64,000 nucleotides of DNA, taken from assembly GCA_038087875.1 (NCBI GenBank), contig CM075983.1:22816001-22880000 (forward strand), read 5' to 3'. This stretch comes from Malacoraja senta. Its lineage: Eukaryota. This document shows, one piece after another, positions 11,264 through 34,383 of the stretch (the stretch's first letter is position 1; the number at the start of each line of letters is the position of its first letter). A model generated the notes under the pieces. It was given only the letters and a program-made list of their open reading frames with translations. It ran no database searches and was not told the origin of the DNA. A program made the translations under genes and the position numbers.

Positions 11264-14200
11264 AGCTCAAACGTGTCAATTTTTTTTCCAGTAGACACAA
11301 CAAATGCAGATGCTGGAATCTTGATCTATTGACAAGTGTATTCCAGAGGTGATGTTGCTCAGCTCCCAACTGGTATGACCAAAGCTTTTCTCACAGTTTT
11401 TGCAGTCTTTACCCACAGCAATCCTTGGAACTTGAACCATGCTTTTTACATTACTATATAGTCAATGTTAAGATTAGTTTCCTAATACCTCGGCAATCTT
11501 GGATCTTATTCCTGAGATTTTGGTGAAGGAATTGATGGAATTTCTCACAACACAAATACATTATATATAACAAGAACAGATTGAGAAAGCTTACAAGCTT
11601 ATCTCTATTGATAGATTTTAATTCTGTGAAGATATTATATGCTATGTATGTTCAATTAAAATTTATGCTATATATGTTCAATTAAAGTTGACCTGGTTTA
11701 AATGAAAATGTACTCTATTAAGTACAAGAATATATATTACAAGCTGGAAGTCTACAGGCATTAATGCGCACTTAAACATGATTCTGGGTGTACAAAAGAA
11801 AATAGTTATAAAACAGAATGGAATAATGGTTATTAAACTGTTAGACAGTGTTTTGAAGATTGACTACACAAGGGTGTTTTCACCTGAACCATTAATATAT
11901 AATCTCAAGTCAGAATATCCTAGATTATTGAAGTGCAGTGAATTATGATTTTGAATTTACAGTTGTCATGCTTGGAGATGTGGATCCTTTGACAAGGGGA
12001 TGACTCACTGACTCATTGCAAGTTTTTGATGGACAGCTCTTTAGCTGGAATGTATTCATGGGACTTTATCATGGCCTGTCAGAATTTGACTTTTTCAATC
12101 TGTCAGGCCAGCAAATGATAAAATAAGTGCAAAACAGCTTTGACTTTTAATTTGCAAGGTAAAGTAAGTCAATTTTATGATACATTGATAAGGGTAGCAG
12201 GTTTGTAAATTACTGTATAGGCGTTATTTGTACTGAATATTGTTCATTTAACTTCTATGTTAAATAAATTGCCTTCTAGTTTTTAGTCCAAATGTCAGTC
12301 TGGTTGAGTGTCACTACATTCTGCATACAAAGATGTGATGAATCCCATAGAGAGTGGTACATTGAAGTAAACCCTGTGCAATGGAAATGATTCTGGATTT
12401 TGGACTTTAAGACCAATTGACAGGGCAGCTATTAACTTGTCATCTTGGATAACTTCAGGAAATATGAAATGCCTAGTAAAACCACATAGGTTCTCAACAA
12501 TTTGTCTGAAGAAGGGTTCTGACCCGAAATGACACCTATCCATGTTCTCCAGATATGCTGCTTACTCCAGTGACTAGAGTTGACTAGATGACTAGAGTTA
12601 CTCCAGCATTTTGTGCCTTTCTTTGATTCTCACTACACTGTGATCAGTTTTACTAACTATAATAACCAAAATGCTCCTTGTGATGCTTCTCATCAATAAA
12701 TTACATGTATTTCTTGACTCGACTTATCGATATCTCTTTCCAGTTTGTATTAGCCTTTTATGGCATCATCCTAATCTCTATTAACTTGCTAATTTTGGTA
12801 CCATTTTTCTGGAGTTTCTGTTCAATTCATTGATACGAACAGCAAACAGGTATCCCCAGTATTGAATCACGGTAGATAGCACTTACAGTGTATTTGAGAA
12901 ACATAATTGGCTACTACGTTCAAATTGAAAATTACATCCTCTTTATAGCCCTTATATTTGTATATCCCTCCCATGTGGCAGCTTGTCGAAACCTTTTCTA
13001 ATGCTGTATTCCATTTTCATCATCTAAAGTCTTACATTTCCCTCCTGAAAATGTTTCTCCAGATTCATTAACCCTTCCTTATCAGAAATTATAACTATAG
13101 AATGGTCATTCCTGAATTAACCACTTTGATCCTTAAATGTAATTTACAGTATGTAGCCTAAATCTAGGCATTTATATCTAAATGCTTGTTTGTTTTATAA
13201 TTTAAATATAGGACAGAGAAAATTTCTATAATAGGGCCTATACAGGGGGAATTCTTGGTTCAGCCATGTTCTGTGCCTCTTCCTGAGGTGCTCCAATACC
13301 GCACATTCCAAAACTGCAGGTATCTCCCACTCCTAGAAGTTATTGCGTGACCCTTCTTGAAAAGAAAATGACTAGATACAGGGCAAAACTGAGTGCAGCT
13401 ATAATTTCCTTTCTTTCCCACCAGTTTACTGCATGAATTACCACTTATTAATGCTACTCCCATTATTACAGTCATCTCTCAATATGTTCTCTCTTAGCAG
13501 ATAAATAAAACCAGCGGAAGCAGTTGCATGTCTTGATTACTAGTTGGTGAAAAAAATAATTAACTCTGGGTTCTGGGTTTGATCCTGACCTCAAATGCTA
13601 TCTGTGTGTCGTTTGTACTTTCTCCCTGTGACTGCATTTGTTTCTCCCAGGTCCTCCAGCTTCCTCCCACATCCCAAAGACACATGGGTTCGTAGATTAA
13701 TTGGCCTCTATACAGTATGTAGATGAATAAAAAATGGGTTTACTGTAGGATTAGTGTAAAAGGGAGGTCAATGGATGGCACGGACTTGGTGGGCTGAATG
13801 GCCTGTTTCCGTGTTGTATATATCTAAATCTCTTCTGCACACATTTATCAAAATTATGTACCATTTGGCATTTAATTGTCCACAAATTCATCCTCCATTA
13901 TTTTACTGCTAATTTAATTTGCTAATTCTATATGTAGCTTATAGCCTGCAATAATTGTTATCCTTATTACATACATCTCCAATTTTCTGATTAATACAAT
14001 ATCCAAGATTACTTCTAATGCTTTGGGATCTATATAAACTCCATCCAATGTCTTCTGCTTTGCTTAAATACCCTGGAATATTTAATTCCCCACCTTGGCC
14101 ACTAGAATAATTCTAGAATGGCTCTTAGAGGGTGCACATTTGTTTCTATGTGTGGCATTTATTTACATAGCTGGTTGCAATTGGAATGCGTGATCAGATA

Positions 14201-17200
14201 AAGTGCCTTTTGACGTTCATGCTATCTTTCTGATTGGAGGAATACCTTTAGGCTTAAAAATCCAGAGAGATCTTGATTTACATGGTCTGTTTTGTAATTT
14301 TACACCATCGCATTGTTCATTGTCTATTCTGTCTCCCCCCCCCCCCCCCCCAAAAAGACACCCACTCCTCTCCACTATTTCATTTTAGCTTTTATCTGTA
14401 GCCTGATTTTTTTCATTCCATTGGGACACTGGTCCCTGCTCTATTCAGGTGAAGCCTGTTTCAACAGAACAGCTCCCTTCTTCCCCAGTATGGATGCAAC
14501 TGCTCCATGAATTACAACCCATTTGTCTGACACAATTTTTGATCCCCACTTTTAACTCTCTGGTCTTAATGATCCAGTGCCAGAGCTTTTGTGGCTCTGC
14601 TTCTCTGCATTGGCCTTTTTTTCCTTCCACTAATTTTGTCAGAACAAATGCTGTCAGCATCCTCACATCCACTGCTTGAAAATACCAACAGGATTGGGAC
14701 CTCCTTGTAGATTTCTCCCCTGGCCTCTCTTCTTACTGCCACATCGTCACAATACTTTCAATATCTAGCAAAGACCAAGCAAACTTTTTTTTATAACTTA
14801 CACCAAGCCAAATAGTTTTGTCATGGTCTCTGCTATTACTTTATATTCCTTCTCTGTATCTTTACCTCATGTTCCCCAGTGACAATTGTGGCAATGGTGA
14901 GTAAATTGTAACTATGGTACAATTTGACGCTGAACCAAATCTGTGAAATCATTTCCTCATATGCTGATAAAAAGAACAGAATTAATGTTAAGCAGCTAAT
15001 CCTGATATTTAAAATGTTGGTACTTCCTTTCACCTCCGAAGCGACATTCCTCCTTGTATATCAACAGAGGTTTAATTTTTTGACGATCAATTGTCCCAGT
15101 CAGAACATTGCTGCAGAATGCCTCAGGGCAGTTTGTTTTACTCAATGGGTTTCAGCGATCTGATAAAAAATCTGCCCTTCATACAATGACCACAAGTGGG
15201 CATGTTTGTTGAAGAATATTCACATGATCTTGCAATCGTTCTGATAATGAAGCAGACCCTGTCAGTGTGTGACAAAACCTGGACAAATTCAGAAAAGCTG
15301 ATAAGTGCCAACCAACATTTCCACCACACACACAACTACCAGGAAACAATTATTTTCAACAACATTTATGAACTTTCCCAACTAATGTATGATTAAGAGA
15401 GGAATACTTTAACCTTCCAGCCTCCACTTCAAAGTAGCAGCTTATCTCACCCTATCTTCCAAACCGCAATGATGGTTGTACAATAAATGCTGCCCGAGCC
15501 CATGATGCTAGTATTCTATAACTGATATGTCATCATTGTACTTCAAGGCACTCTCATCCATTATTTTTAATATAATTCTACAGTCCAAGTGAGAATTATC
15601 AAATTCAGTTTGGAGGAAGAGTTACAATGGTGGGAAGAAAGATGGCCTTTCACCTCAGCTGTGGCATCCTGCTTCACTCTGTTGGACTTTATAGCAAAGG
15701 CACTATTCTTGGGTGTGTTAAAGTGCACCCGTTTTACACTCCATGCCTTAGCAAAGAGGCTACCATCAAGGGAGTAACTCATCATTGGGATGGTCTTGCT
15801 TTTGTCCTGACAGTTTCCATTGCTATGAACATTTTTGTTGTTGTTTGTGGTATTTTCGGTCAGACATCTACACAGAGATGGATGAAGCAGGTTACTGCAT
15901 CTGCCTTTTTCAGACATATTAATCCACCTTCCCCATGGAAGAACAACTCAAGAGGCCCAAACCAACTGTCTCAGTTTATTCAAAGATGGTAGTCACCAAA
16001 TTGCTACTGTAAAGCTTGGGAGTTATAAAAACATGAAGATTCATCGTCATCAACAAACATTGTATCTGGGCAGTGAAAACTGTTCATCAGTCATTGTATA
16101 ATAATCCAGTTACTTCATAGTGAGAAATATACAATAATTCACATATAGAAACCAAGATATTTTTATTTAAAAATATGCATACAATATAAAGTGCAATTAC
16201 ACCCCTCTGTCAAATTTCAATTTCCTTATATACATCTTTCATTGAATTCAGAATAAATATGAATTTTCCATTCAGATTTGGTGCTCCACAGCATCAATGA
16301 CATGAACATGGACATTTCTTAAAGCTTTTGGGGATGAATCCACATTCAATGGGACAAATGTGCTCCTTTTCAAAGCTCTGCAATGTTTATGCACATCAAA
16401 ACCACAGAGGTTCAGAGAAGAAAACATAGTTATATCCCAACTAGCATTACTGTAGCCAAATTACACTTCATCTGTTTGAGTCTGTGTGAATAATCTGTGG
16501 AATTCCCTGCCACAGATGGCAGTGGAGGGCAATTCACTGGATGTTTTCAAGAGATAGTTTAGATTAAGCTCTTAAGGCTAAAGGAATCAAGGTATATGGG
16601 GAAAAAGCAGGAATGGGGTACTGATTTTGGATGATCAGCCATGATAATATTGATGGTGGTGCTGGCTCGAAGGGCCGATCTTCTATGTTTCTAATTCCTC
16701 CTCCAACAAGTGAGTGTGACGTGGAAGAGCAAATACTGTATACAGAGAGATTACCAAGGTGGAAAAATAATTTGGTTGTTATATTGGAAAATTTAAATCA
16801 TCCCAAGGAAAACTGGGATAGTGCTAAGAGCAGAAAGGCTGAAAGAATTTCCAATATGTCCAGAACACTACATTTCTAATCCATCAAGAAAAGAAGAATT
16901 AGTTATGCTTCTTGAGAATGAGGTAGGTCAAGTGTACGTATTGGTGCAGGACATGATCGGTTAAATTACTTCCTTTTTTACTCTTACTCTTCTCTGATTC
17001 CATTGGTTTTCTTCTACTCGTGGCCAATTTTAAAAGTTCACTTACTATTTGACTCATTCATGCTCAGTTATAAGCTTGATCATTTTTGTGTATGTGAAGG
17101 GCACAAAACTGCCTTACATAGTAGTTGATCCGTAATTGATACCTTTAAGGTCAGTTAATAGTGTTCTTACAGTAATATTAACCACAGTTATTGTACCATG

Positions 17201-17388
17201 GCTCATGAAATACTACAGCAAATCATCGCAAAATCATGCAGATCATGGAAATTTGTCATAAACTCAGAAGGTGCAGGAACCAATCATCAGGCTCGTCAAC
17301 ATCCTTTATGATGTCATTTTTGTGTTTATAGTTTTGTTTGCAAAAGGATGCTCAAATGTTTACATATTTCTTCAGTAATACATTTATA

Positions 17389-20300
17389 CTACAACTTATC
17401 ATCTTCCTTCTCATTTACAAAGCCCATGTTGTCAAAGGAATATGGAGTCTGTGGCTGCTGAACTGTGTTAGGTTCTGAATGACCATCAATGAATCCATCA
17501 TTGGAATGACCTTTCAGAGATTTCTTCTGCACTTCTTCGAATATCTGCAGAATCTTCAATCAAAATATAAATAGTTCATTAGCAAAAGAAAACAATTTTA
17601 GAATTGTTCCATTAGAATTCATCCATTAGAATAAATACTTCAAATATTATTCCATTGATGATTTATAATGTAAATATGAAACAATACACAGCAGGTGCTT
17701 GTGGGTTTGATTCACAAATTTCATTCAGTTGCTGGCACTGAATGCGGATATATGATTGTGCTCCACTTCCAAAATAGTCTCAAAGGAGGCAAAGTTCAGT
17801 TTCAGAGTACTGCACACAACCACAATGGTGTTAACCATGCATTTATTGCAAGCAACTGAGGATAGCCTTCTACTCTATAACGGGGAGCTATGTGCATTTG
17901 AGGCTCCCAGCATCCTTAATTCAATGGTGAGAAATGAAAAATAACATAACCAAGTTTTTCTTGTCCTTTGTTATTCAGTGTGGACATTGATAGGATTGGC
18001 TTTGATTGTGATGCCTTCTTTAGTAATGAGCTTTACTTTAGACTTTAGAGGTACAATGCAGAAACAGCTATCAGCCCGTGTTGTAGTTCTATCCTGTAAA
18101 CTGGAGACTATTTACATGGTTACAGAAGCCAATTACCTACAAACCTGCACATCTTTGGAGTGTGGGAGGAAACTGGAAACCTTCGCAGTCACAGGGAGAT
18201 TGTACAAACTCTGTACAGAGAGCACCCATAGTCAAGATTGAATTCGGGTCTCTGGTGCTGTAAGGCAGCTTCTGTGCCACCATGCTGCCAGTGCCAGTCC
18301 AGAATTGGCTGGACTCTCAGCAGCTATTGGAATGTTTCCCAACCACTGAGATTAGTTTCAGAAGAAGGTGAACAATGAAATTATTGAAACTTTCAAGAAC
18401 ATCGAAGCTGTGATAGTAAAGCCATTACTATTTAGTTGTGTTGTGGGAATAAGTGACTGCTGAGTTTATGTCACTCTTTAATGGAGGTATCTCTATATTT
18501 GGATAAAGATCTTCCATTAAAAAAGTTGTTTTTCAATCAAAGAAATAATGAGAGCCATTAAGTTGCACAATGAGTTGGACAAAGTGGACAGAATGAGCCA
18601 TTATTCCTATATTTTTATTCATTCACAGGATGGAGATACACTGACTAAGTCTGGATTTACTAACCATCCCCAATTGCTCCTCAAGTTAATTGGTCCTCAA
18701 GGAGTCAACCAGATTGGTGGGACTGAAGTATCATTTAAGCTATACCCAGTAAGGATGAGAAATTTCCTTTCCTGAAGTATACTCAGGAAACGAGTTTTTT
18801 TCAGTAACAATCCAATAGGTTGGGTAAAGTGACATGGTGTGTACGAGATTATACTGCCAGGATTAAAGTTTTTTAAAAAACACTTGGGCATCACAAATAC
18901 TTATGAATGGTATTGAAGTCAGTAAGGATGAAAATTAAGGAGATTATTATCAGACTCATTGTTAAATTATGGCTAACTAAAGGAAAGTGACGAATAAAAT
19001 ATTAAGATCTTAAACAGGATGAAACTCAGAGGAGGTTCAGATTCTACCGAGACTTTATGGTAAAACCATATTTTATCAACCCTGTCTTGCTTCAGCACAC
19101 AGAAGCAAAAGATAGGCAGGTTTAGAACACAAAAGTAAACGGAGGCTGTTCTAACAATTGCCAAAATAGAAAGAAGGACAAAACTGATCCTAATGTCACT
19201 GGATTTGGAACCGCTGGAGAAAATCTACCCTCTTCAACCGCAAATGGAGACATCTGGAAAGTGACCTTTGTGAAACACAGGGCAGTAACCCGAATAAAAC
19301 AAGTAAATCTGAAAAGTTACTTCAAAGTATGATATTCCGTCAGGTAGAGTAGAATAAAGTAGAATATATATTTCAGCTTGCTTCTCATAATGAGCTGTGG
19401 ATACTTGTCTGGTGAGAATCATTCAAGAATGAAATGGATGATAGGATTGGAGTCTTTTGAAGTCTTTCTGAGAACCATTAATTTAAATACATTTCTTCAT
19501 CTTTATTTTTTCTCCCAAATCTCCAGATTTTCATTTTTAAATCTGCCCTCGTGCAAGGTCAAACTATAAAACTGATTTCAGGACAGATATGTTACATCAA
19601 TGCATCAATATGATGTTACTCTTACCTCTGATTTGGGCACAATGCCAACTCTAAAGAAACCAAGTGTACCCGTCTCTATCTTGGTACAGTCTACAACAGT
19701 AGAGGCAATATTCTCAGGTGACGGCCCATCACACAATACTCCATTAACCTGTACCGGGAACAAAATTTCCATGTGTAATTAACTATGACGATACATGTCA
19801 GAACTTACGTTTGAAACTTAAAGAGTTAACTTTACCTTTTCTCCAAGTTTGGCATAGACTTGATTGTGGTGTGTGGTGTCTGCTTCTCCTGTTGGATTTG
19901 CTGATGTCACCGCTATAGGGCCTACCTGCACATGCAGAGAAAGATTAGCTACCATGTAGACAGAAGTGGATCTACACTCATTCCCTGTTCTGATTGAGTT
20001 TCTGCTGAAGAGGAAGTAAGCTCCATAATGAACCCTAGCAATCTGGCTAGCAAAGGGAATTTTGCAATGGTTTTTGCTCATAATCATTATCCAGTGACTA
20101 GACCTGTAAGGCCTTGAAGTTGGGAAGAACCGTGTCAGGCCATGATAAAATTAAAGCTCTTCCAGGCACCACAGTAAAAACAAAATGAAACTTTTTTCAA
20201 AACCACCTTTAGTGAAATTTTTAGTACTGACAGTTTCCACACTTAATATAATTTCTACAAAAATAAGACTTAACCAAACCTGCATTCTGCTTAAAAACGC

Positions 20301-23300
20301 AAATCTTCCACAAGAATTGTGAGAGCTGCTTTTGCTTTCTCTCTTGCACCAAACACACACGAATGAATGCCCTCATGCATACACATACAAATGCACTCAT
20401 ACACACTCATGAATGCACACACGCACATGCACACACACTCATGGACGCATGCATGCACACTCACACATGCATGCACGCACACACATGAATGCACTCATGC
20501 ACGCACTCATACACGCATGAATACACTCGCGCACACACACTCATGCACACATGCATGCACAAACTCACACACGCACACACACTGTTCTCTTTCCTACAAT
20601 CTAATAATCACATGCTGATTTGTTTCATTTGTTTTGTATTCCATCGAACAATGTATTTCCTTTTATGCATGCTGCAGACTTTAGAATAAGACATATTATG
20701 GTGATAGGTTCATTAGCAAAATATAGCTGAACAGTATTTCTTTGGTAATTCTGAAATACTTACAACTGACCCCATGAAATAAAGCAATCACACACCTGGA
20801 ATTAACTACTGGTTCATAGTTACAAGTATTTCCCAGTGAAACAAGTGGATATTCTATGTGAAAATCAAAAGAACTGCAGATGTTGGAAAACCAAAATAAA
20901 AACTGAAAATGCTGGAAATTCTCAGTAGATTAGAAGGCATTCTGTGGAGCAGTTCTGATGAAACCATTTCTCTCTCTACCGATGCTATTTCTAAACATAG
21001 ATTTTATTTCAGATATTCTGTCAAAACCCACTGAATCGGGAAAGTAAATAAAGGCAATGAAAAGTGTCAAGGAAATTCAGCAATATATGCAAAATATATA
21101 AAAAAGCTCCTTCGGAATATCTCACCTGATCAATGAGATGTGTTGTAACAGCACAGTCTGGAATCCTAATGGCGATGCTTTGAGGTGTCCCGATGTACTT
21201 ATCTGCATGTTTCAGTCCAAATGGTTCCAGCCATTCACCTTCCAATGAAAACAACATTTGTTAATAATCATTCTCCCACATTGATTTAAATCAGATTGAC
21301 ACATGAATTGTGTGCTAGTGGAACAGATAGTTAATTTTAATTATGCAATTTGAGATTGGCAAATATGCATGGAATGTCCATGGTTATACTTTGATAAACT
21401 GATAGTGTTCTAAATTGATGAAATACTTCACAAGATACTTCACGACAGAATGAAAGTGGATTTTTCCAACTGCATTTTGATACAGCAAAGAATAGAGACA
21501 CCCAATAAAAGATTTCCAATCTGTCGTTTGAGCTGGAAAATGAAACACTGCATGAATGAGAAAAACATATTTGCTTGGTGGGTGGTTTAGAGGAAGAATA
21601 TGGAGATGAACAAAGGCGTATTACCCCTGGGGATGACAAGGCTGATAGACGATGGCCAAACTGCCTGCATAAAGTCCCACAATAGAGGGTTTAACAGATG
21701 TTTAACTGGTTCCAGTTGTGCTAAGCTGGAGATCCACAGAGACATGGGCCTGTCCTTGGCCTGCTTCTTTGTGCTGTTCAAACAAAAAATATACATTTCT
21801 TAGTTATATTTTTCATCTATTCTTAGCTTACAAATTATAAAGCATCAAAATACTGCTGCTTGGTATTGGCATTACTTGACATGCAAGAAATTAAGGAACT
21901 GAATCAGTCATCTTTAGCTCATCCTTTGTATTAGGATAGTTCTTCAAGAAAGTAGTTAAATAAATGGAACATTGTACTTCCAAGGATGTTTGTACATTAT
22001 CTTTACATACAAGGGATGTTATCACTTTACACATTTATCCCACAACAAATGTTCAGTGTTAAATATGATCCATACATTTTTTGATATTTAATATTTATGT
22101 CTTGAGATATGTTGAAATAACAACCTAACAAGCAATGAAATATATTCATTGCAATGGCTTCATAATAGGTTTAGTTTCGTTTATCATCGTCATGTGTACC
22201 GAAGTACAGTGAAAAGCTTTTGTTTTACTATTCAGTCAAAGAAGAGCGAATACAATCAAGTCATCCACAGTGCACAGATTGATAACCAATAATGATACAT
22301 TAAAATAAAAAAAAGGGGGCTGGAATTGTGAGGAAAAAAATGCTGCAAACACTTGGCAGATCAGGCAACATCTATGGCAAGAGAATCAAAGTTAACATTT
22401 CAGATTGAAGATCCTTCTTTAGTCTGACTGACTTGTTGAGTGTTTCAGGTTTTCTTGAAGTGGATACATTTTTTTGCACCAGTTCTGCTCTTATGCTTGC
22501 AAATTTCAAGATTCAAAAGATTCAAAAGATTCAAGAGATTCAAGAGAGTTTATTGTCATGTGTCCCAGATAGGACAATGAAATTCTTGCTTTGCTTCAGC
22601 ACAACAGAATATAGTAGGCATAAATAAATACATTTCAGGATCTAGTAAATACAATAAGAAATAATTCCAAATATACAGCTATTATTTTCTATGTTCAGAT
22701 ATAAGCGTGAATAGATAGGTGCATTAGTGATGTTCTCCACTCCAAATGCACTAAAGGTCTTTGGTACAGGCCCAAGTGAATAACACTCAATGTAAAACAG
22801 TTCCTACTTGTAAGCCTTCTCAACAGCATCAGGACAATTGCAGGCTGCCACCAACACATACACAGTGTCTGTTGGAATACCACAGATTCCTCCATTTTTC
22901 ATAATTTCTGCAGAAAAGAAATAACATTTTAATAAACAGGAAAATCCCAAAGAACATATTGTTTTTCTTCCTAAATGTGTTCAGTGTCATGATAAAAAAA
23001 ATGATTTAAAAGCAACAATAGACATTGAGGACTATTGACCACAGGCTCTGACGGAACTGACAAAGTTAAGCCTGGTAACCATTTTTTTACTCTGCTAGGT
23101 GGCACAAATGGAACATTGAGAAGCTAGAAAAAAAGTCATTAACTAAATTCTGACAAACTATTAGCCATCACCCAGAATATTGATGGGAAGAATCAGGAAT
23201 CACAATATGGGAGGAACTATGAATGACTGTGCCAAATTTAATTACTCCAAATCTATCTACTCATCATCGTTTTTCACAGGCTTTCTTTGAAAGTAAATAG

Positions 23301-26300
23301 ATGATTGCCTTTGTCACAATATAAAACAAAAATTTACAATAGCCATAATATGGAATAAAAATGTACTTTGAACCTATGTGGAAAAGAAAATTCCAATTTC
23401 CCTGTGTAAATTCAAATCCCAAATTTCTACTGACAATCTGAAATTTAATAAGCTCTGATTGTGAATTTGCCCACAATCCTTCACACTGTTCTGCCTCAAA
23501 ACCAGATATAACTTCAAATATCTTGATTGCCTTCATAATGCTTTTTCATCTATTTGTTTTTCAGTGGAAAAATTACTAAGTTTCAAGCTTGTTTTTGCAT
23601 CTGTGACATACTATAATCAGACTTAAACTTCTCAGTAGGTTTTCATTTGCATTTAATACCCTTTTGGTAATAATTTGTATAGAACAACATAAATTACTTC
23701 ACTGATGGTTTAACTGTTGCCTTCCAAATGCAACATCATCCTGGATGTCTGATATTTTAAATTTAAATTTTTTCAGTTTCCATTTTATAACTATTCTACC
23801 CTTTCCTGTACAATTACAAATATGTGCATGATTACATCTCTTTTATCCCTTCATTTTGATCAGTCTACATTTTAGGACATTTTACTGTTACTTTTCTTTT
23901 CCAAAATTTACCATTCTCAGCCACTGCACATTCTAACATACCTTCTCACCTTGCTCGCAGTCTCTGCTTCTTGCTAATTTATTTTATAGTTTACCAAGGT
24001 CCTGGTTTTGGATCTTTGGAAAACACAAATTTCATGCCCCAAGACTGCAGCCAAGTTATTACACAAATGTCTTTTAGACTTGTGGGATAAAGTTTCCAAG
24101 AAACATTGGTGAAATTGACACTAAATATATTGAATCTCTTTGGTCTCTCCAATGATTTTAATGCTGTCTTATCATTTCATGACCATCACAAACATAATAG
24201 GATATAAGTATATAGAAGAGAAGTTATAAAAAGAACAGCCAAGTAATTACATTTCATAATTATGATTTGCATGATACACTATCTTAGAGGTTACATATGA
24301 AGATACAAATTAGAAGCATTAGATCATTCAGCCCTTCAAGTCAATAAGAGGCTGGGTAAACTAAATGTAACATGTTACTTATTAATTTTGCTATTTCGCT
24401 TAAAGAAATGAAAACAGCTCTGAAATAACAATGTGGAATCCAACAATCTTTGCAGAGCCTTACCTGCAATCTTTCTGACTGAGGTGGTTTTTCTTGAAGG
24501 CAGATGAGGGCACACAGATTTGTTCTGCCCAAAGCCACACAGGCTTGCCCAGGCCCGTCCCAGAGGTAACTGGGGTTTCTCAAAGCTTTGGTTAAAGAGG
24601 GTGGCCAGAAAGCAGTAAAAACTAATCAAACCAAAAATGATGGTGACTCCAATATCATATCCATAAGGAATTGCATTAATGGCATCCAAAAGGAAGCTTA
24701 TTAAGATCAACTGAAAGCTGAGTGATAAGGCAAACCATGCCGTGTTCAGAAAGCAAGTGCCAATCACCACAAAACTGTTAAAGAGAAGGAAGCAAATAAT
24801 TCCCACAGCAATACCAAACCCCCTAGTCGAACCATAGAGACCACCATATCTGGTCAAACCCCAGATTATCCATATTAAACCATACAGAATGAAAGCACAG
24901 CTTTCAAGGGTTTTACCCCGGGAAAAAGAGATTGAGCCACACAGGATCTGAAGGACACCCCCAGGAATAACAATCCAAGGCAAAACTACAGTGGCTAAAG
25001 GTGCCAAAGGATTGATTGATACAGTGATGGCAAAACAAGCCACAACATTGCAGGCATGGGCTAGAATCTCAGCGTCTGAGTATCTGGAGTATCCTAAATA
25101 TGGGTTATGGAAGTCTTTACCTGACTTTAGAGATAAGGCATTCATCCTACTGAATAAAGTTTTAACAACCCCTTCTCCAGTGGGATATGTCAGGGGCCCT
25201 TTGCTATTGAAAAGAGAAATTAAAGTAACGCAAGCAGATGCTATAAATATAGCCACACTCACGCCTTGTGCTCCACCATGGAAAAAGCCTGTGGAGCGAG
25301 CTGATACTGCTATACAATAGGCAACAAAAAACAATGGATACAATCCATCAATAAGGCTTTTACTGGTCATGAACAGAGCCAGCGTGAAAAATAGGACAGC
25401 AAGAACAATCGGGACTGGAACTGGGAAGAAGGGTTGGCTGCTTTGCCATATGCTGTACAGCAATGCATATCCCTCTGCAAATTTTAATATGGAGGTCAAA
25501 CCAAAGAATGTAGCATTCAGCGTGTCAAAAGCCCTGTAAGACAAAATACAAACTATAATTTGGTAGACGCCTGCTGTCCACAGCCAGGGAATCTGACCAA
25601 CAGACAGTTTGGAAGTTACACCCAATAGGTGACATCCGAACACACTGGCAGATAGCATATTAGTGATGTATCCCAGAACTATTGTGTCATTGTTAAAGAA
25701 GCTTATCGATTTCAATGTCACATGGGACTTATTCTTGGACAGACTAGTCCCTGGGAAAGTGATTTGTCCTTTGCTTATGAAGACAGAAGCACGGCCCAAT
25801 CCAAAGTAAATGCCGATAAAGGACACGATCAAATAATTTGAAGCCACTGCAGAATGACCAAAAGATTTATTATATAATGCAGCAATCTCATGAGCAGTAG
25901 CAAGAGAAATAGCAAAGGCAATCACACCAGGGATTACATCCTTTTGGATGAACCCCACAACCCCAATGATGAAGAGTACCAAGACTAAAGCTACAAAACC
26001 AGGGACCAGAGCATTTCTGACTGAATTACTCTGAACTACATTTGCTCCCATTAAGATGTGGATCAGGCCAGATCCACACCACAGGACAGACACTGTCAGG
26101 CATAGATTCACAAAAGGGATAGCTCGATTTGAACTCTTCCGTATACCTGAAAAAAAAAACAAGCAGAAAATAAATAGTAAAGGAGATGACATAGGTTTTA
26201 CACACATTCACCAATTACACTGAGTGTGAACTACACCATTAGCCATTCTTCCTCCATAGTCTATACATTCTTCAGCTTCAAATGACAATCTACCCGCTTA

Positions 26301-29300
26301 AAGATTCCAAGCGGCATTGGTGGGTGAGGAAAATAAAATTCACATTTCATGTTGATCTTCCAACAGAACATTAAGACTAATTTTGGATTTTTGGAATCTG
26401 CAGTATTTTGCTTTTTCCCCCATCTTATTTTATTGCACTGCTTCAGATTGTTGTATAATCTTTGCACCATCTGTTTTGCATTTGTCATTGTATTTATTGT
26501 TGTATCTGTCATCACCATGCGTACTGTTTCCTCTAGTAGCTTCATATGATCAAGAAATCTCATTGCCCCCTATGACAATAAGCTAATCTGAATCTATTTC
26601 ATAAGTATACAACTGATAATGTTTCATTGGTTATCCAGTGAAAGCACTTTGTTTCCTCAATGTAAGAATATGAGACTCACTACAACATGGATGAGTCCTA
26701 CATGGAGATAAATTTACCTCCACTCATCCATGTTGTAGTGAGTCTCATATTCTTAACATTGGGAAACAAAGTGTTTCCTGGATAACCAATGAAACTTATC
26801 AGTTGTATACTTATGAACTCTGGTTTTAAACTCAACTTAAGCAAAGATATTTTCTCCATATCAACACTGTCATCTTGTTGTAAAAGCCCTTTAGCAGGCT
26901 TCTAGTCAAATGGGGTAAAGCTCCCACAAGTTTTGCTTAGCTCTAAAAACAAAATTACTCGTAATTTTTACATCAATAGCTGAAATAAAAATAGAAAATA
27001 TTAGAAATTCACAGCCAACTGAAGCAGCATTGATGGAAAGAGCAACAGAATTAACATTTCAAGTTAATGAATTGACATTATCGAAAATGTTAAATCTATT
27101 TCTTTATCCGCAGATGCTCCCTGACCATACTGAATCTTCCTTGCATTTTCTGTTTTTATTTGACGTTTCAGGCAGTTGCCATTTATTGATTATCCAATGC
27201 ATGCATCTCTTTTTTAGAAACATAGAAACATAGAAAATAGGTGCAGGAGGAGGCCATTCGGCCCTTCGAGCCAGCACCGCCATTCATTGTGATCATGGCT
27301 GATCGTCCCCTATCAATAACCCGTGCCTGCCTTCTCCCCATATCCCTTGACTCCACTAGCCCCTATTTTACAATATGAAAGGCAGAAGAGCGAATAATTA
27401 TTAAAGTCTGGATCAAACAAAGTTCAGTGCAAGTTTAACAACATATTTACATTCCAAATAAACTCCAGTCCTTAGTTTACATTTTTTTTATAACGGCCTC
27501 ATTCACCAGTGTTGCTGTTATCTTGCCATCCATCAAAATTTTGTGATCCGAGATATATTGATTCCTTAATTCTACTAATCAAAATGCACTACATACATTA
27601 CATACTCAGCTACACTGAACTTAATTTGCCAATTACACATGCATTCTGAAATGTTATTAATATCCTTCTGACACATTTGCCCTTTAGATCTCCCAATTTG
27701 GGATCTTTGGCAACATTTGAAATTGCACTTACAATTTCTCCCCCTCCCCCCAGCCGCATCATCTTTAAGTCTAAAACAATTGTGTGAATTATTCCAAGCA
27801 TTAATCACACTTCCTTTGTTTCATCAGTCTGACTAATGATCCTCAGTCACTATTCCCTATTTCCTGTTTTACACTTTGCATGCAGATACACATATATACG
27901 GCTTTTAATCAATTTATATTCTCCTTTATTCTATTCCTTCACTTTTTATCTTATCCCTTTGAAGTTTGTCACGCGAACCCAAAATATATAAAACTAATTC
28001 AATCATAGTATGATAACAACGTGTATGGTTCCCCGTCTGTCTGTGAACTCATTCGAGTTCAATCCTCATCACCAAATATGGTTTTATTCCTTCTGAACTT
28101 CCTCCACAGACATGATACTTGTGACCTTTTATGGGTTTTTTGGAGTCTTGTATCCATCCATTGATTGACACTGTATTCCATTTAAGATTGCATAAATAAT
28201 GCTGAACTGAAATGTCCAAGGAGATAACTTCCAAACAAGGCAAACTTCATAAATAATTTGAAATTACCACAATAAATAATATGCTTAATCTATGCCTTAC
28301 AGTGGAAATTTATACAGATGGCAAACCAGTTCATTTCCTTAAATATATCCTCTATGTGACATTTATTCGTGAAATGTGAGCTTTATTATCACGGTACCCT
28401 TCTGAAAGTGGTCAGATGCCTCATCCTAAACCTGCAGATAAATATGTATCTTCACAGGGTATATTGTTTTAGGTACAACTAGGTGACTTCATTGGCAACT
28501 TCAGATAGCTGTTAAGGCTCTGAACCTGTAGGTCAAAACTTGACCAGGAATGTAGACCTCTTCCTCTTGGAGTTTCCTTGAGGCAGTCCATAATCAGAAT
28601 TGACAAAAAATGTTTTGGATGTTGACAATGTAATCAGTGAGCAGGAGTTAAATTCTCCAGCTTTTGGATAGGATTTGAACGTGCTTTAAGATAATTATTC
28701 AAAGCTCTATATTATTGGCCAAGTAACATAACTATGATGTTACCAATGCCCCCCAAATGTCTAGTTGTAGTGATGAAGAGAGTGTTAGATCTCCAGGTTT
28801 GAGTCCCATCTTCCAAAAAAATAATTGCTTTTAATATTATGTATTTTAAATGTAGGGGTGTTAGATAAATATTGATATGTACATTAGATGGTTTAAGGAG
28901 TGAACTAAATCTTCTTCCAATTTAAAAAAAACTTACGTTTTTCGGGCGCTTTGTGCAGTTTCTGGTTTATATAAATGACCAAGAATTGTAAACTGGTTTT
29001 AGAAAAATTTCACCCAGTCGGGTGTAGATATTCCTGAGGGGGGCTCTAATCCTGATCTTGAATAAATCAAGCCACCACACACGGGTAGACGAAAACCCAG
29101 AGGTCTAGGATGAAAACACGATCCCCGATTAATAATCAGTTCCACTGATTAAAAGTGCCACGTAAGTTTTCAGTGAGAAGTCCGGAGAAGAATCCGGACC
29201 CGAAACGTCACCTTGCTATGTTCTCTAAGGATGTTGCCTCATGAGTTACTCCAGCACTTTGTATCTTTTGGTGCCTTCCCCGAGTACTCACTTAATTGAA

Positions 29301-29852
29301 TATCCTTTCAATGGCAATGAAGTGGATAGATGGCAAAGCAACTACAACCCGCCACAAGGTGGCGTTTCAGGTGCAAAACGCAAGCGTGTGTGAGACCGGG
29401 TGGATGTTGGCGATAATTACTACGTTTGCATCAAGGAAAATATCTCAAATATTATCATAGCGCTCTCATCTCTATTCACACAGGCTAACCAGATAATAAC
29501 GAGTGTTAATAGCAAGAGTTTGCATTGTAATTCAGCACACTGGAACGCCCGCCAACAGCAACGATGTCTTATTCTCCTCAGTGTTTGTAACTCACCTGTA
29601 TAGCATAGGAGAGCCGCCACGATAAGCAGTAAAATACCGAGAGCCGTGCTGGGGATCAGCGGAACAGTGGAATAGTAATTCACAGCCAGCAACAGAGCAC
29701 CTAACACACAATAAACAAGGGGTTATCCTTTATAACCAATGAAACAAATTTAGGAGGAAATGCTTGAAGGCTCGGCGATTACCTGCGCTTATACTGAGAA
29801 TCCCCACGGAATAGTGCAGCGTCTCGACGCCGTCGTATTCTTGCTCCATCAT
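17389..29852 (-). CDS. Uncharacterised 865-aa polytopic membrane protein: 3 tandem AceTr (SatP/Gpr1/Fun34/YaaH)-like repeats plus a C-terminal YrdC/Sua5-like domain. Exons: 29852-29783, 29700-29596, 26146-24464, 22907-22808, 21773-21625, 21238-21126, 19925-19836, 19748-19626, 17553-17389
   Basis: All 8 introns are GT-AG and phase-compatible. The summed CDS is 2598 nt with no internal stop. It starts MMEQEYDGVETLHYSVGILSISAG downstream of a TATA box and ends ...YSFDNMGFVNEKEDDKL*. The last acceptor could alternatively be 17544 (in frame, 3 aa shorter). Confidence 0.88.
18035..18289 (-). mobile_element. tRNA-derived SINE in the last intron of the fusion gene
   Basis: Reverse complement of the same SINE family (aaacctgcacatctttggagtgtgggaggaaactgga...cgggtctctggtgctgtaaggcagc). 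Confidence 0.75.
19626..22907 (-). CDS. Exons 4-8 of the fusion gene: YrdC/Sua5/TsaC-like (threonylcarbamoyl-AMP synthase fold) domain
   Basis: The spliced peptide carries family motifs in the expected order: GGICGIPTDTVY, KKQAKDRPMSL, WPSSISLV, SIAIRIP, GPIAVTSANPTG, ASTVVD, FRVG. Confidence 0.9.
20352..20582. repeat. Imperfect (CA)/(CATG)-rich microsatellite
   Basis: About 230 bp of acacac/gcatgcac units. Confidence 0.9.
24464..26146 (-). CDS. Exon 3 (1683 nt) of the fusion gene: most of the multi-pass AceTr/SatP-like membrane region
   Basis: Core of the 610-aa ORF with many hydrophobic segments. GGVLQILCGSISFSRGKTLESCAFILYGLIW and SFYCFLATLFNQSFEKPQLPLG resemble E. coli SatP [31 protein letters not shown] and AIYLAMGEVLNEQFGRTVLPIG (recalled from memory). 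Confidence 0.85.
26598..26817. repeat. Inverted repeat with ~97-bp arms (26598-26696 and 26722-26817) and a 25-bp spacer, in intron 2 of the fusion gene
   Basis: ttcataagtatacaactgata...tacaacatggatgagt is mirrored by actcatccatgttgta...tatcagttgtatacttatgaa. Confidence 0.92.
27215..27365 (-). mobile_element. CR1 LINE extreme 3' end
   Basis: (agaaacat)n tail followed by aggccattcggcccttcgagcc..., as at 48999. Confidence 0.8.
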
Positions 29853-29994
29853 GTCGAGCTCTGAGTTGAGAAGAATGTGTTGTAAATATTGAGCTGAACT
29901 CTATGACATGAATTTTCCCTTGAATATTTCGTAAGACTCGACGATGTGCGCCGACTTCTCGGTCCACAGATGAATCAGCAGCTCCTTGCTGCTC

Positions 29995-30001
29995 TTTTAT
30001 A
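29995..30001 (-). promoter_or_regulatory. TATA box (TATAAAA) of the AceTr-YrdC fusion gene
   Basis: Consensus TATAAAAG on the - strand about 143 nt upstream of the ATG, within a CpG-rich region. Confidence 0.6.
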
Positions 30002-30387
30002 TCAACCTCCCTCCTCCTACTGCCAGACACGCAGAATATGCAAATCCCACGGAAGACTCTCGGTTGGGTGCTGGAGGCGCGTTGTCATTCCACCTGCCAC
30101 CGTTATATCGCAGCTCGCAAAGTGGCTCCAGAATCAAATGCAACAAAGGCAAAGAAAGGTGTTTGACCTCTAGGGATAATGCACAATTTCACGTACGAGA
30201 GAGAAGCTAGTAATACAAGAAAATGCAATAGAAAATGTTAGGACGAAGTGTGCGGGTCCGCAAAACTCTAGCCCGTTTCTTCCTTTAGATTTTGACCCAA
30301 AGCAGACGTTGAACATGTCCTCACCAACCTTTAAGGTAACTGAAAATCTGAAATAACCTGCAGTTTCGTCTGCAGAAATACAGTTTG

Positions 30388-30679
30388 CACTTTAAACTCT
30401 CTTTGAATAAAAGATCTCTGTAAAATTTTCCCCAGTGTAGGGTTTAGTGATACAGCGTGGCAACAGGCCATTCGACCCACCGTCCGCGCCGATCGTTGGT
30501 CGACCAACGATCACCCTTACACTAGTTCTATCCGACACACTATGGGCAATTTGCAGGTCATATAACCCACAAACCTGCACGTCTTTGTGGGTACTTTTGT
30601 GCAGATATCACCCGTAGTCAGGTCGAACTTGGGTTCCTGACGCTGTGAGCCAGGAACTATACCGCTGCGCCACTGTGCC
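30388..30679 (-). mobile_element. tRNA-derived SINE between the divergent genes
   Basis: aacaggccattcgacccacc...aaacctgcacgtctttg...gtagtcaggtcgaac...taccgctgcgccactgtgcc. Confidence 0.65.
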
Positions 30680-33600
30680 GAGTGGAGGTGAGCGTGGGAT
30701 AATAGTATGGACGTGGTGGTCCTCAGGGCTTGTTTCCATGCTCTATCTCTAAACTAAGTGTAGACGGCAACTACTAAGAAGACCGAGCCTGGGCGGGTTG
30801 AAAGACACAGTTGGGTGTGTGGCTGGAGAGAAGGGACATACTGTCTAGAGGCATAAGCACATTGTGCAGAATCCTCGTTGTATATTGAGATTGGTTAAAA
30901 TACCAGATTCATACAAGTGACCGGCTCTCCGATGGGAAACCAATCCCATCTCCACGCTCCTCGCCTGTAGCCAACTCATCAATAAATTAACCAGACGGTG
31001 AAATTAAATCGCCGCAGAGTGCTTTGACAGGGTCTGTAAAACGTCAACGCCCAACAACGCGGAAGAAGCCAGCACGGAAATACAATTTACCTGTTTTTTT
31101 CTTACACTGGGTGTGAGCGAGAACCAGTACGTAGCCTCGAGTTATAAAAATGTGACTGTCGATTGTTGAAATAAAATACTTGGACAAATAGCTACACGAC
31201 TGAAACGATATAATTCCAAATGTGGATGTTTAATATGTGTTCAAATATACTTAAAATTTAGATGAGTTTAGGAGAGACATAAATTCACTATTTCCGTCTG
31301 AGACTATTAATTATGAAGACAAACTGGGACCCTGCTTGCGAGATGCTGACTACCAGCACCTTCCCCGTCTCACTTCCAAGAGAGAGGCAGTGTATGATTC
31401 TACGTGCTTACCACGAGTTTGATTTTTTTTTAAACTCGGGAGAGCTCTTGAATGAACTCGTACAGTGGGACAGGGCTGACTTTTTTACTTACCGTACGAA
31501 CACCACCCATCAATTTGATCCAGTTGAAACACACCTCTCAGCCGTTGATTTTCACTCGCGTCGTATCATTTGATTACTATTTTTTTTAATGCCTGGCAAT
31601 TGACCAGACCGATTCGTTTCAATTATTGATAGTTCCCTTCTTACAGGTTAACAGTTATAAAGAACTCTCCGTGGGTGGAGACACTTAATTAATGGACGGG
31701 TAGGATCTATGCTTTGGCGACGTATTTAAGAACAAACACTCTGAAGCCTCGCAATTTACACCACGCGTGTTGTCCGCACCCCCCCCCCCCCCCCACACAC
31801 ACACAAACTCTTCCCTTCAAGGGTGGGGGTGGAGAGGACAGCTTGGGTTTACATAGCACCTGCCCTTTTTAGAACACCATGATGGCTTAAACGAAGTGTA
31901 ATTATCAAATGTGTTTAGGAAAGTTTTCTCAGCAATATGTATCGGACTCTACAAGGGAAAGGGCAAAGATTGGCCTGCTCTTATATAATTGGACAGGGCA
32001 AGTGACTGAAGTTTCAGTGGGTGAACCTTTCGGGGTCGGCGAGCACAGTTTTATTAGCTTTAAAATAGTTACGGATAAAGACAGGTCTGGTCCACAAGTT
32101 AAGTTCTAAATTAGGGAGACAGACCACAAGCAGCGCCAAACGTTAGAAAGGCAACAACGAAAATTACCAGCAATTGTAGCGACAATTACCAAGGGGATTC
32201 TCATGGTGAAAGATCCAAATATGATGTATTCAAAAGAGTTAATATCGCACTTAGGGCTAACGGAATCAAGGGATATGGGGGGGGGGGGGGGAGCAGTAAC
32301 GGGGTACTGATTTTGGATGATCGGCCATGATCAAATTGGACTCGAAAGGCCGAATGGCCTGCTCCTTCACTTATGTTCTATGTTTCTATATCGATGAACC
32401 TAAGTGAAGCTTATATTCTCTTTTATTAGCTCTCATTCAATTAATTTCTCTGCCTTATTATAGCACTATGACGGGGAAATCCCATGTGAAGAAATCATCA
32501 CATGAAGCAATCCCACTCGATCACGAGAACTGAATTCCGCTGTGCGGTGATTTAAAGTCATATGGTTCATGCACTGAATGGGGAAACGGGTAAGAATGCC
32601 CAGCAACTGTAGATCCCCAAGGAGGCAAGTGGGCAAGCAAGTACGCACATCTAATCCCAGTCCTCGGATTACCTTTCGAGTTAGTACATGCAGGACACAC
32701 AGGTCCACAAACACGCCTCTTGGAAATGGGGAAAGGGTCTGCAGGCATTTTAGTTTTGTCACGTCAGCTTGGAAAATGGTGACATATATCTTGGCTCTAC
32801 TTTTCCCAGAATCACCTCTCTTTTGCTGTCTTTGTTAAGTACTGGATGCTTTGCAATGATGGGACTTGCTTAATAAATTTGTTCTGCTCATTACCCTATA
32901 CTCACATATGTATCGTTGCAAGTTACAATCAAGTCACTTGATTCATGTTAATTTAAGACAATCTTATAATCATGATCAATTTAGGAACCCGTGGTTTAAG
33001 CTTCATGTTTAGAATCATGTTTAGCATTCTGTAATCGTGTAAATTATTGTAGCTATAAAATGTACCGAAAATTATATATTTTCAAGTTTTTAATCGGGCG
33101 TAAAAGACATCCTGGGTCATTTAGAATCCGCCCAGTATGCTATGTGAACACATCTCCTCTTTAGAAACAGTTTCTTAGCTTTCCAGGAAATCTGGAACAT
33201 ATGATATGGGTGCGACGTCCTTAGTAATTATTGCTACAGCTCACAAATTTGGCATTTGATGATGCGGTGTGGATGTTAAACACCAAACCGACTTTCTGCA
33301 CAACCTGAATTACTTAATCTTAATTTGAATGCCACCGTGGGTAATAGATCTGCTCTTGTTTCTCTTAAATTGTACGGGCTCGTTCCCTCCCGAAACGCCA
33401 CCTGTCCATGATCTCCAGAGGTGCCACCTGACCCGCTGGGTTACTCCAGCACCTTTTGTTCCAACGATCAAGACCTTGCTCATCTTGGTCGCCTCCCCCC
33501 GAATGTGGATTTGGATTGGGCAAGGGCGTGGTGAACTGGCTGGTGGCGTTTTGTGCATTCACAGAAGAATGGCTATTTGGGCGAGAACCAGATAATTAGA

Positions 33601-34222
33601 AAAATCAAATTTAAAGTGATTATCCTCAGAAGCAATAGATAACGGAACGGGTGTCAAATAAAAATCGACACGAAGTGCTGGAGTAACTCAGCGGGCCATT
33701 CAGCGGAGATGGACACCTATTCGTATTCCTTTTCTCCAGAGATGCTGCCTGACGAGATGAGATGAGTTTCTCCATCACTTTGTGTCTATCTTTGGTATAA
33801 ACCAGCATCTGCCGTTCCTTCCTATTTCACTGAAATTTTCAGGTGTCAATTTAATGCCGTTAGCATTTTAATGGTACCGATTGTTATTTGAAACGACTTT
33901 TGGTTGACAGGTACCAACAAACGTGCTAGATTGCACGGACATTATCTGAGGAGGTAAATACAGAAGCTGCCCCGGGCTTCCGTCTATTTCCTGGTGTCGG
34001 TGGGTGGGGGGTGGGTGGGGGAATGAGGGTGTTACCAAACACAATGCGTGTTTTTTTCCAAATCAGCATGACAAGGCAATTTTCTTTAAAAGTGACGCCA
34101 GGACAATAGAAATTATGCGATAAACTTGTGAATGTGCTTCGATTAATTAGAAAATATAATATAAATGTTTGAAGGTGACCGGGAGTATTTGTCTTCCTTA
34201 GAATTACCTGGTCAGGACTAAT

Positions 34223-34303
34223 CAGGAAGTTGAGAGAGAGCCAAGTAAATAATTTACATAGTCAAGTCCCCGCCGCTGGGCGGTACCATTCCACACTATA
34301 AAA
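34223..34303 (+). promoter_or_regulatory. Core promoter of the GATD3/ES1-like gene: ETS-like CAGGAAGT (34223), GC boxes (34268-34283), TATAAAA (34297-34303)
   Basis: Motifs are seen directly 80-160 nt upstream of the ATG at 34384, in CpG-rich sequence. Confidence 0.6.
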
Positions 34304-34383
34304 CCCGGCGACAAAGAGCGGAGAGACAACTGTGTCAGGATCCACTGAAACCTCACGCTGTTACTGCACCGCCTGGGTCGAAC

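Follow-up and report, generated by a model that had tools for sequence, protein, structure and literature searches.

The 64,000-nucleotide stretch of Malacoraja senta DNA analyzed here (contig CM075983.1 of assembly GCA_038087875.1, positions 22,816,001 to 22,880,000; hereafter the window) carries on its minus strand a gene that joins three six-helix repeats resembling the channel protein SatP and its relatives in the Gpr1/Fun34/YaaH (AceTr) family to a C-terminal YrdC/Sua5-like domain. The list of open reading frames (ORFs) breaks this gene into a 610-residue hydrophobic minus-strand ORF at 24375-26207 and a set of scattered small ORFs. A database search with the large ORF led to full-length proteins of about 860-930 amino acids from all vertebrate classes, the best match being the 'uncharacterized protein si:ch211-153b23.4' of the sister skate Leucoraja erinacea (P0001; 864 amino acids, 95% identity). 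A tblastn search with this protein, combined with a search for splice sites, yielded nine minus-strand exons from 29852 to 17389 and reproduced the coordinates given in an earlier note on this DNA. All introns are of the GT-AG type, their phases are compatible, a single stop codon terminates the frame, and there is no N anywhere in the window. The product comprises 865 amino acids, 825 of which are identical in P0001. Our results show that the gene belongs to a family of triple-AceTr/YrdC proteins, specifically to a lineage, here called A as distinct from its paralog B, that corresponds to the NCBI orthology group named after zebrafish si:ch211-153b23.4.

Exon 1 (29783-29971) contains 5' untranslated region (UTR) to at least 29971 and, from the start codon at 29852-29850, the coding sequence (29852-29783) for the start of repeat 1; it is supported by the splice model and by a 3,459-nt transcript contig of the sister skate (L003; run SRR13269342, Logan), which covers 29971-29781. 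Exon 2 (29596-29700; tblastn, splice model, L003) encodes the first two transmembrane (TM) helices of repeat 1, whereas the 1,683-nt exon 3 (24464-26146) accommodates the remainder of this repeat, ending at about 25776, and then repeats 2 and 3 (about 25685-25200 and about 25073-24585, respectively), followed by the linker that leads to the YrdC domain. The latter starts in exon 4 (22808-22907; GGICGIPTDTVYVLVAAC), which matches PF01300 (E 4.3e-6) and is supported by L003 and by contigs spliced from 22907 to 24464. Exon 5 (21625-21773; Pfam, splice model, spliced contigs) bears the motif WPSSIS and the site of an altered tetrad: in the translation (TKKQAKDRP), aligned to TsaC2/Sua5, residues K655-K656-Q657 (21761-21769) occupy the canonical KxR position, with Gln in place of Arg. 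The domain continues through exon 6 (21126-21238; IAIRIPDC; tblastn, splice model, spliced contigs, L003), exon 7 (19836-19925; Pfam, splice model), with the SxN motif in TSANPT at 19890-19907, and exon 8 (19626-19748; VLCDGPSPENIASTVVDCTKI and FFRVG; splice model, L003). Exon 9 (16675-17553; L003 over 17555-16675) comprises the last coding segment (17553-17389), which specifies the C-terminal tail, the stop codon at 17389-17391 and a 3' UTR reaching to about 16675. The YrdC motifs named in the earlier note (PTDTVY, IRIP, TSAN, STVVD and FFRVG) are all present in the translation.

Transcript data show an intact, expressed gene whose exons are spliced into a single mRNA. Contig L003 translates exactly to P0001 and maps onto the window in the same nine blocks, adding about 120 nt of 5' UTR and the 3' UTR. 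In addition, four public runs were aligned to positions 21100-26200 of the window. Contigs from two of them, X1 and X15, which stem from a close relative with a few per cent divergence (X1 being flagged 'RNA? (probably DNA)'), join 22907 to 24464, 21773 to 22808 and 21236 to 21623, with ends (CT..AC) that correspond to GT..AG on the minus strand, and a single 1,002-nt contig from X1 combines 100 nt from exon 4 with 901 nt from exon 3. The depth in X15 is 150-220 over the exons, compared with about 32 over the intron. Run X10 shows none of these joints and includes one contig that extends from 22604 to 26200 without any difference, a pattern of intron read-through and complete identity as expected for genomic DNA of Malacoraja senta. 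The alternative that the locus comprises two separate genes, or that the fusion is an artefact of gene prediction, would fit the ORF list, which on its own gives merely disconnected pieces, and we found no other support for it. With the whole protein encoded by one transcript contig, the joints of exons 3-4, 4-5 and 5-6 present in spliced contigs and absent from the DNA run, and the same architecture in more than 200 orthologs among the matches listed, we see next to no room for this alternative, and the RNA evidence rules out two separate genes. The nine-exon, 865-residue protein proposed in the earlier note is thus upheld by tblastn, splice search and transcript alike, including the exact junction from 24464 to 22907. 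Separately, each of the four runs shows an extremely high summed contig depth over 22126-22640 in intron 4, reaching about 1.8 million in X10, and numerous loose contig ends, which indicates a high-copy interspersed repeat.

An AlphaFold2 model built on P0001 with 30 orthologs contains 18 long TM helices, arranged in three sets of six (residues 11-181, 213-373 and 417-578), with predicted local distance difference test (pLDDT) values of mostly 80-94 in the membrane part. A Foldseek search with the whole model retrieved SatP (5YS8, 5ZUG and 5YS3; target-normalised TM-score 0.75), and VIA-align superposed SatP (5YS3) on repeat 3 (residues 412-588) with a Z score of 20.0 and an rmsd of 2.3 Å over 170 of 182 residues; with the whole model, both programs placed SatP on repeat 3 only. 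As a single sequence, repeat 3 matches E. coli SatP (5ZUG) in phmmer (E 5.5e-4), and the two share a GG..Q..G...(R/K)G.T...F..YG..W core and a terminal LP(I/L)G (hPxG) motif. When repeat 1 was folded alone (pLDDT 85.5), the six SatP chains were its top six Foldseek matches in the PDB, and a Foldseek-independent search of 48,161 PDB representatives ranked SatP first (Z 19.1, 175 of 188 residues aligned) and the urea channel UreI second (Z 14.9). Among the three repeats, hhalign comparisons of vertebrate-only profiles were not significant (E 0.09-0.22). After the addition of mollusc, amphioxus and lineage-B sequences, repeats 1, 2 and 3 matched a profile of PF01184-positive single-domain proteins of about 200 residues with probabilities of 91.6, 97.5 and 99.8%, respectively, in register over roughly 150-180 columns, and repeat 2 matched repeat 3 with a probability of 97.7%.

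All three repeats are AceTr/SatP-like by fold or profile, and the architecture of three such repeats and one YrdC domain in a single mRNA, as proposed in the earlier note, is borne out by the model, the profiles and L003. The six-helix fold of SatP/YaaH (5ZUG, 5YS3; PF01184, TCDB 2.A.96) is common to repeats 1 and 3. However, SatP is a homohexamer of single domains, whereas the protein described here has three copies per chain and an attached enzyme-like domain. The Tyr residue at the constriction of SatP (Y72) is found in repeat 3 only, in the sequence LYGLIW with invariant Tyr and Trp, whereas low-identity alignments place Val at this position in repeat 1 and Thr in repeat 2. We infer that repeats 1 and 2 are degenerate and regard repeat 3 as the likeliest conducting pore because the core motifs of AceTr proteins and the Tyr at the constriction are preserved in it.

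The C-terminal domain matches PF01300 over residues 619-792 of P0001 (E 4e-33), and the window's own YrdC exons, present as three small ORFs, match it too. No other part of the protein is as strongly conserved, the mean column identity being 87% in this domain and 69% overall. Its profile retrieves TsaC2 from T. maritima (E 7e-21) and Sua5 from archaea (4e-17 and 3e-15), with a weaker match to YciO (just 5e-5), and TsaC2/Sua5 proteins are also its best matches in the PDB, showing 24-29% identity in structural alignments. In common with TsaC, Sua5 and YRDC, it has the YrdC fold, the PTDT and SxN motifs, the tetrad Lys and the equivalents of Arg121, Ser181 and Arg195; however, it is membrane-anchored and not accompanied by a SUA5 domain. 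The members of this group that synthesize threonylcarbamoyl-AMP (TC-AMP) for the tRNA modification t6A are defined by a KxR/SxN tetrad (PMC2685093, PMC6004061, PMC10321239), which has been reported to be indispensable for the binding of ATP (PMC6004061) and whose KxR residues, K50 and R52 in E. coli YrdC, are essential and separate TsaC from YciO (PMC2685093). We mapped the relevant residues of Pa-Sua5 and E. coli YrdC (PMC6004061, PMC2685093) onto 30 lineage-A orthologs. The tetrad Lys as well as the Ser and Asn residues of SxN are each kept in 30/30 proteins, whereas the Arg residue is present in none, being replaced by Gln in 20, His in eight and Lys in two cases (KxQ, KxH and KxK). Four of the five Thr-binding residues of Pa-Sua5 (T35, H67, R121, S181 and R195) are kept, with the Arg121, Ser181 and Arg195 equivalents invariant, whereas His67 is Trp in all 30 sequences. 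WPGPLT has become WPS[SPQ]IS, and Asn62 of Pa-Sua5, which contacts the same pyrophosphate phosphate as Arg58, is replaced by Arg (Arg660) in 28 of the 30 orthologs. The Gln/Arg pair may represent a relocated phosphate contact. Four invariant Cys residues lie near the pocket.

Because its KxR/SxN tetrad is incomplete, we do not classify this domain as a TC-AMP synthase, and the lineage-A proteins probably do not serve as TC-AMP synthases for t6A. Coupled synthesis of a threonylcarbamoyl-type product appears unlikely, since the tetrad Arg is absent in 30/30 orthologs and His67 is replaced by Trp, two changes that the earlier note overlooked when it described the domain as adenylating. A possible parallel is YciO, a paralog without K50 and R52 that fails to complement a t6A defect (PMC2685093) and has been described as inactive. 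The domain studied here likewise departs from the tetrad and probably makes no contribution to t6A; it differs from YciO in retaining the Lys residue.

The architecture of this family is already in print, and its novelty is low. Ghasemi et al. (bioRxiv 10.1101/2025.05.26.656167; iScience 2026, PMC13316224) reported it from in silico work, describing proteins of about 870 residues with three six-helix Gpr1/Fun34/YaaH domains and a C-terminal Sua5/YciO/YrdC domain, an AlphaFold model superposed on SatP, and the proposal that two protomers rebuild the hexameric ring; the study includes no experiment with the animal proteins. The window gene has the identical architecture and falls inside one of their two vertebrate clades. 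The architecture is therefore not undescribed. The earlier note's remark that it knew of no functional description agrees with the literature searched, in which we found no functional characterization of any family member. Ghasemi et al. state that the family is absent from mammals, that the YrdC domain is absent from the protostome clades and that a few protostome sequences may reflect horizontal gene transfer. A text search of the preprint gave no mention of synteny, neighbors or DJ-1, and the tetrad change is not mentioned in the vertebrate section or under the terms searched. Our results differ from this account in that platypus has both paralogs (P0062 and P0258) and that molluscs and amphioxus have the complete fusion and lie, on either side of the A/B split, outside the vertebrate groups. 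When 1.84 billion representative proteins were searched exhaustively with exon 3, only 55 proteins matched at E<=0.001. All those bearing names come from vertebrates, amphioxus or molluscs (scallops, oyster, clam, snail, chiton and argonaut), and matches with a single domain are of metagenomic or unnamed origin. Those of the named mollusc and amphioxus proteins that were scanned at full length contain PF01300 at their C-terminus. No therian protein was found among the 240 matches listed. The earlier note had allowed for orthologs as anonymous models in non-mammalian vertebrates; the anonymous models indeed exist, whereas the restriction does not stand in view of platypus, amphioxus and the molluscs.

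By their motifs, the family members fall into two lineages. Lineage A, to which the window gene belongs together with the vertebrate '.4' group and sequences from four molluscs, is characterized by K-x-(Q/L)...R and WPS, whereas lineage B includes the vertebrate '.3' group (si:ch211-153b23.3), lamprey, amphioxus and Argopecten, is characterized by K-x-R-P and YPGG, and keeps the full KxR/SxN tetrad. In a maximum-likelihood tree of 29 full-length proteins, which is unrooted and has some long branches, the longest internal branch (1.92) separates vertebrate A and the four molluscs from vertebrate B, amphioxus and Argopecten, with the molluscs lying outside the vertebrate groups. Read in the simplest way, these sequence relationships place the fusion as well as the A/B duplication before the divergence of protostomes and deuterostomes. 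The paralog in lineage B shares the triple-AceTr/YrdC architecture and is a tandem or near neighbor of A in mackerel, gar and amphioxus; its TM part is only 22-28% identical to that of lineage A, and its head-to-head partner is not an ElbB/ES1-like gene but IRG1L/pIRG1. In the window, a tblastn search with lineage-B proteins matched this gene alone, giving no second copy.

Upstream of the fusion gene, beyond a divergent intergenic region of about 4.4 kb (29972-34383), lies a plus-strand gene of the ElbB/ES1/GATD3-like type (DJ-1 superfamily) at 34384-41250. Its four exons (about 34384-34497, 34780-34953, 37880-38083 and 41059-41250) tile positions 2-36, 37-93, 93-160 and 159-217 of the ElbB model NF008747 (NCBIfam); it keeps the Cys motif GLCCISPVL, has no N-terminal extension ahead of the conserved core and matches, in tblastx, the DJ-1/PfpI genes beside the mackerel and goose orthologs. 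The G+C content is 0.43-0.47 at 30-36 kb, as opposed to 0.33-0.40 inside the fusion gene. The head-to-head pairing of lineage A with an ElbB/ES1-like gene recurs in goose, gar and mackerel, in the last case twice, with two recent A copies, and the genome of the sister skate has a 225-residue gene without recorded Pfam match in the same divergent position. Lineage B, in turn, is arranged head-to-head with an MmgE/PrpD gene of the IRG1L/pIRG1 type in amphioxus (L004, 4473-21826), catfish (L007, 5441-13853) and gar (L008, 1-15053). The distance between A and B is 5 kb in mackerel and about 70 kb in gar, where both lie on one chromosome, and in amphioxus B is followed by a second copy in tandem that resembles A more than B, so that the linkage of lineage A to MmgE/PrpD is indirect, via its linkage to B. 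The Xenopus lineage-B locus has no called neighbor within 10 kb, and the context of the nearest prokaryotic single-domain AceTr protein (P0163) includes HpaB, ABM and short-chain dehydrogenase genes, with no PrpD or YrdC. In the scallop Ylistrum balloti (L006, 1-9499), a divergent second family member (855 residues) lies upstream of the lineage-A gene, followed by a Glyoxalase/VOC-domain gene.

A survey of IRG1 evolution (bioRxiv 10.1101/2022.06.17.496652) names, as genes in synteny with pIRG1/IRG1L, those for VOC, YrdC, 2-oxoglutarate (2OG)-Fe(II) oxygenase and GAT, without recognizing the 'YrdC' gene as a channel fusion. The 'GAT' (ElbB/ES1-like) member adjoins the window gene, and the scallop VOC gene echoes the listed 'VOC'. 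According to the same source, pIRG1 occurs only in molluscs, amphioxus and lamprey, whereas IRG1L occurs in gnathostomes including platypus and has been lost in therians, and zebrafish IRG1L is a mitochondrial-matrix cis-aconitate decarboxylase that makes itaconate. The distribution of the fusion family (molluscs, amphioxus, lamprey and gnathostomes including platypus) is the same as that reported for pIRG1/IRG1L. Zebrafish expression data link these genes as well: si:ch211-153b23.4 is induced upon Shigella sonnei infection, ranking within the top 50 host genes by differential expression and standing in the heat map directly between irg1l and si:ch211-153b23.5 (PMC6980646), and irg1l,.3 and.5 are hub genes of one module in a weighted gene co-expression network analysis of a separate data set (PMC11140123). 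We suspect that si:ch211-153b23.5 is the ElbB/ES1-like neighbor. A further gene, zgc:174917, induced along with irg1l and.4/.5 (PMC6980646), encodes a 2OG-Fe(II) oxygenase of the phytanoyl-CoA dioxygenase-like type and is a possible candidate for the '2Fe(II) oxy' gene of the IRG1L neighborhood.

The remainder of the window contains repeats and mobile elements. Positions 1-6799 and 10419-17218 form a direct duplication (6,800 aligned positions, 99.985% identity, period 10,418-10,419 bp), which either arose very recently by tandem duplication or is an artefact of the assembly and whose right-hand copy ends within the 3' UTR of the fusion gene, 171 bp below the stop codon. Retroelement fragments are located at 35110-35784 (+), 49194-49712 (-) and 52919-53644 (+); the last of these matches Pfam RVT_1 (E 2.9e-20), the ORFs of the other two are near-copies of each other without Pfam match, and one fragment sits within intron 2 of the ElbB/ES1-like gene. 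At 59462-60481 (+), a Tc1/mariner (Sleeping Beauty-like) transposase is split into two ORFs, the first with HTH_Tnp_Tc3_2 and HTH_SB and the second with DDE_3. Finally, a tandem repeat at 47744-48197, in which ORFs of both strands reiterate an 11-residue peptide (LKVLKQAALPLV...), is probably a minisatellite.

What, then, might the fusion protein do? The leading explanation, still unproven and favored by us with only slightly more confidence than doubt when taken as a whole with family membership and mechanism, is that it acts as an organic-anion channel of the IRG1L/itaconate module. In this model, the 18 TM helices would make up three SatP-like six-helix pores arranged as a pseudo-trimer, a pair of protomers would recreate the ring of the SatP hexamer, and repeat 3 would be the likeliest pore for a small organic anion. 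Given the even number of helices and the K/R-rich linkers, the YrdC domain is predicted to face the cytoplasm. It would keep its nucleotide and carboxylate contacts (Lys, SxN, R727, S786/T787 and R803), whereas the loss of the KxR arginine and the Thr-binding His would preclude the formation of TC-AMP for t6A, so that the domain may bind or adenylate a different ligand or sense ATP to control the channel. The gene would be part of a conserved, infection-induced neighborhood that comprises an ElbB/ES1-like enzyme and, via the tandem paralog, the cis-aconitate decarboxylase IRG1L/pIRG1, a setting that makes itaconate or a related product of the module the most likely anion to be transported or sensed. 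Several observations weigh against this model. On the channel side, the NPAPLGL signature is degenerate in all three repeats, the aligned positions reading LHYSVGIL in repeat 1, NDT(I/V)VLGY in repeat 2 and SDAEILAH in repeat 3, and the window's exon-3 ORF stays below the gathering threshold of PF01184 (15.8 bits versus a cut-off of 25; E 0.011). P0001 shows no PF01184 match in a Pfam scan, and PF01184 is matched at E<=1 in 22 of the 30 orthologs (best 1.2e-7). The three Gpr1_Fun34_YaaH matches expected in the earlier note are therefore seen by profile-profile and fold comparison and not by Pfam, whereas the expected YrdC match was obtained and the anticipated structural resemblance to SatP and TsaC was confirmed. 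The YrdC part of the whole-protein model has low confidence (pLDDT 25-65). As for the itaconate link, direct adjacency to IRG1L is seen for lineage B and not for the window gene, a tblastx search with the amphioxus MmgE/PrpD gene gave no MmgE/PrpD exon in the 64-kb window, and the authors of the IRG1 survey saw no functional clustering (bioRxiv 10.1101/2022.06.17.496652). Moreover, synteny, co-distribution and co-expression are all correlative, and the transport, binding and enzymatic roles of all family members are predictions.

Among the alternatives, one retains the channel and dispenses with itaconate: a non-catalytic YrdC domain would bind ATP/AMP, bicarbonate or an amino acid and thereby open or close a carboxylate channel, a sensing role that the earlier note had also offered as an option. 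The loss of the catalytic Arg and the Thr-binding His with retention of the AMP-side residues points in this direction, as do the precedent of YciO and the extreme conservation of the domain, expected of a specific ligand site. However, Arg660, situated at the place of Asn62 in Pa-Sua5, may restore phosphate binding and hence catalysis, and the conserved pairing with metabolic enzymes is left unexplained, so that we consider this alternative possible but rather unlikely. A second one, put forward in the earlier note, goes the opposite way and envisages a channel-enzyme in which transport is coupled to the synthesis of TC-AMP, or of a different carbamoyl/ureido adenylate, from Thr, bicarbonate and ATP. 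It can draw on the YrdC/Sua5-like fold and most of the motifs, on TC-AMP synthases being the best PDB relatives, on the full tetrad in lineage B and on the similarity of the SatP fold to UreI. Nevertheless, we judge it improbable, the least likely of the functional readings, given that a residue essential in E. coli YrdC is missing, and a tetrad reportedly needed for ATP binding is incomplete, in all 30 lineage-A sequences, that His67 has changed to Trp and WPGPLT to WPSSIS, and that a Kae1/TsaD-type acceptor domain is absent.

A further alternative takes the immediate neighbor as its guide. As a partner of an ElbB/ES1-like glyoxalase III/deglycase, the channel would move glycolate or lactate, derived from glyoxal or methylglyoxal, instead of itaconate. 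Skate, gar, mackerel and goose share the conserved head-to-head pairing, ES1 and GATD3A have been reported as glyoxalase III/deglycase enzymes, and AceTr proteins carry acetate and lactate according to Ghasemi et al. (PMC13316224). Yet the pairing is seen in jawed vertebrates only, the divergent gene upstream in scallop is another family member, the A-like copy of amphioxus has lineage B upstream, and for the ES1 paralog lacking a mitochondrial targeting sequence the glyoxalase/deglycase activity is putative. This partnership therefore strikes us as unlikely, though less so than the coupled channel-enzyme.

Returning to the organic-anion channel of the IRG1L module, it is tempting to go one step further and to speculate that animals possess an ancient itaconate gene cluster whose missing membrane component is the triple-AceTr/YrdC protein. 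This cluster would comprise the genes for pIRG1/IRG1L, the B and A fusions, the ElbB/ES1-like 'GAT', VOC and 2OG-oxygenase and would be one that is conserved from molluscs to monotremes, is co-induced upon infection and was lost together with IRG1L in therians. The channel would then move itaconate, a precursor or a derivative, and the YrdC domain would activate or sense the acid using ATP. We advance this broader proposal only tentatively and think it more doubtful than the channel function itself. Such a module may have entered animals as a unit, because AceTr proteins are otherwise microbial and a horizontal origin has been proposed for metazoan IRG1.

AceTr channels have long been thought to be absent from animals. 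The family described here places them in most non-therian vertebrates, joined to a domain that normally serves an essential tRNA modification. The label 'Threonylcarbamoyl-AMP synthase', attached to many of the orthologs in UniRef, is probably wrong for a domain with an altered tetrad. If the link to IRG1L is true, fish, amphibians, reptiles, birds and monotremes would possess a dedicated organic-acid channel for itaconate-based innate immunity, encoded in one of the rare metabolic gene clusters that animals have conserved, and its loss would help to explain what changed when therians kept only the non-matrix form of IRG1.

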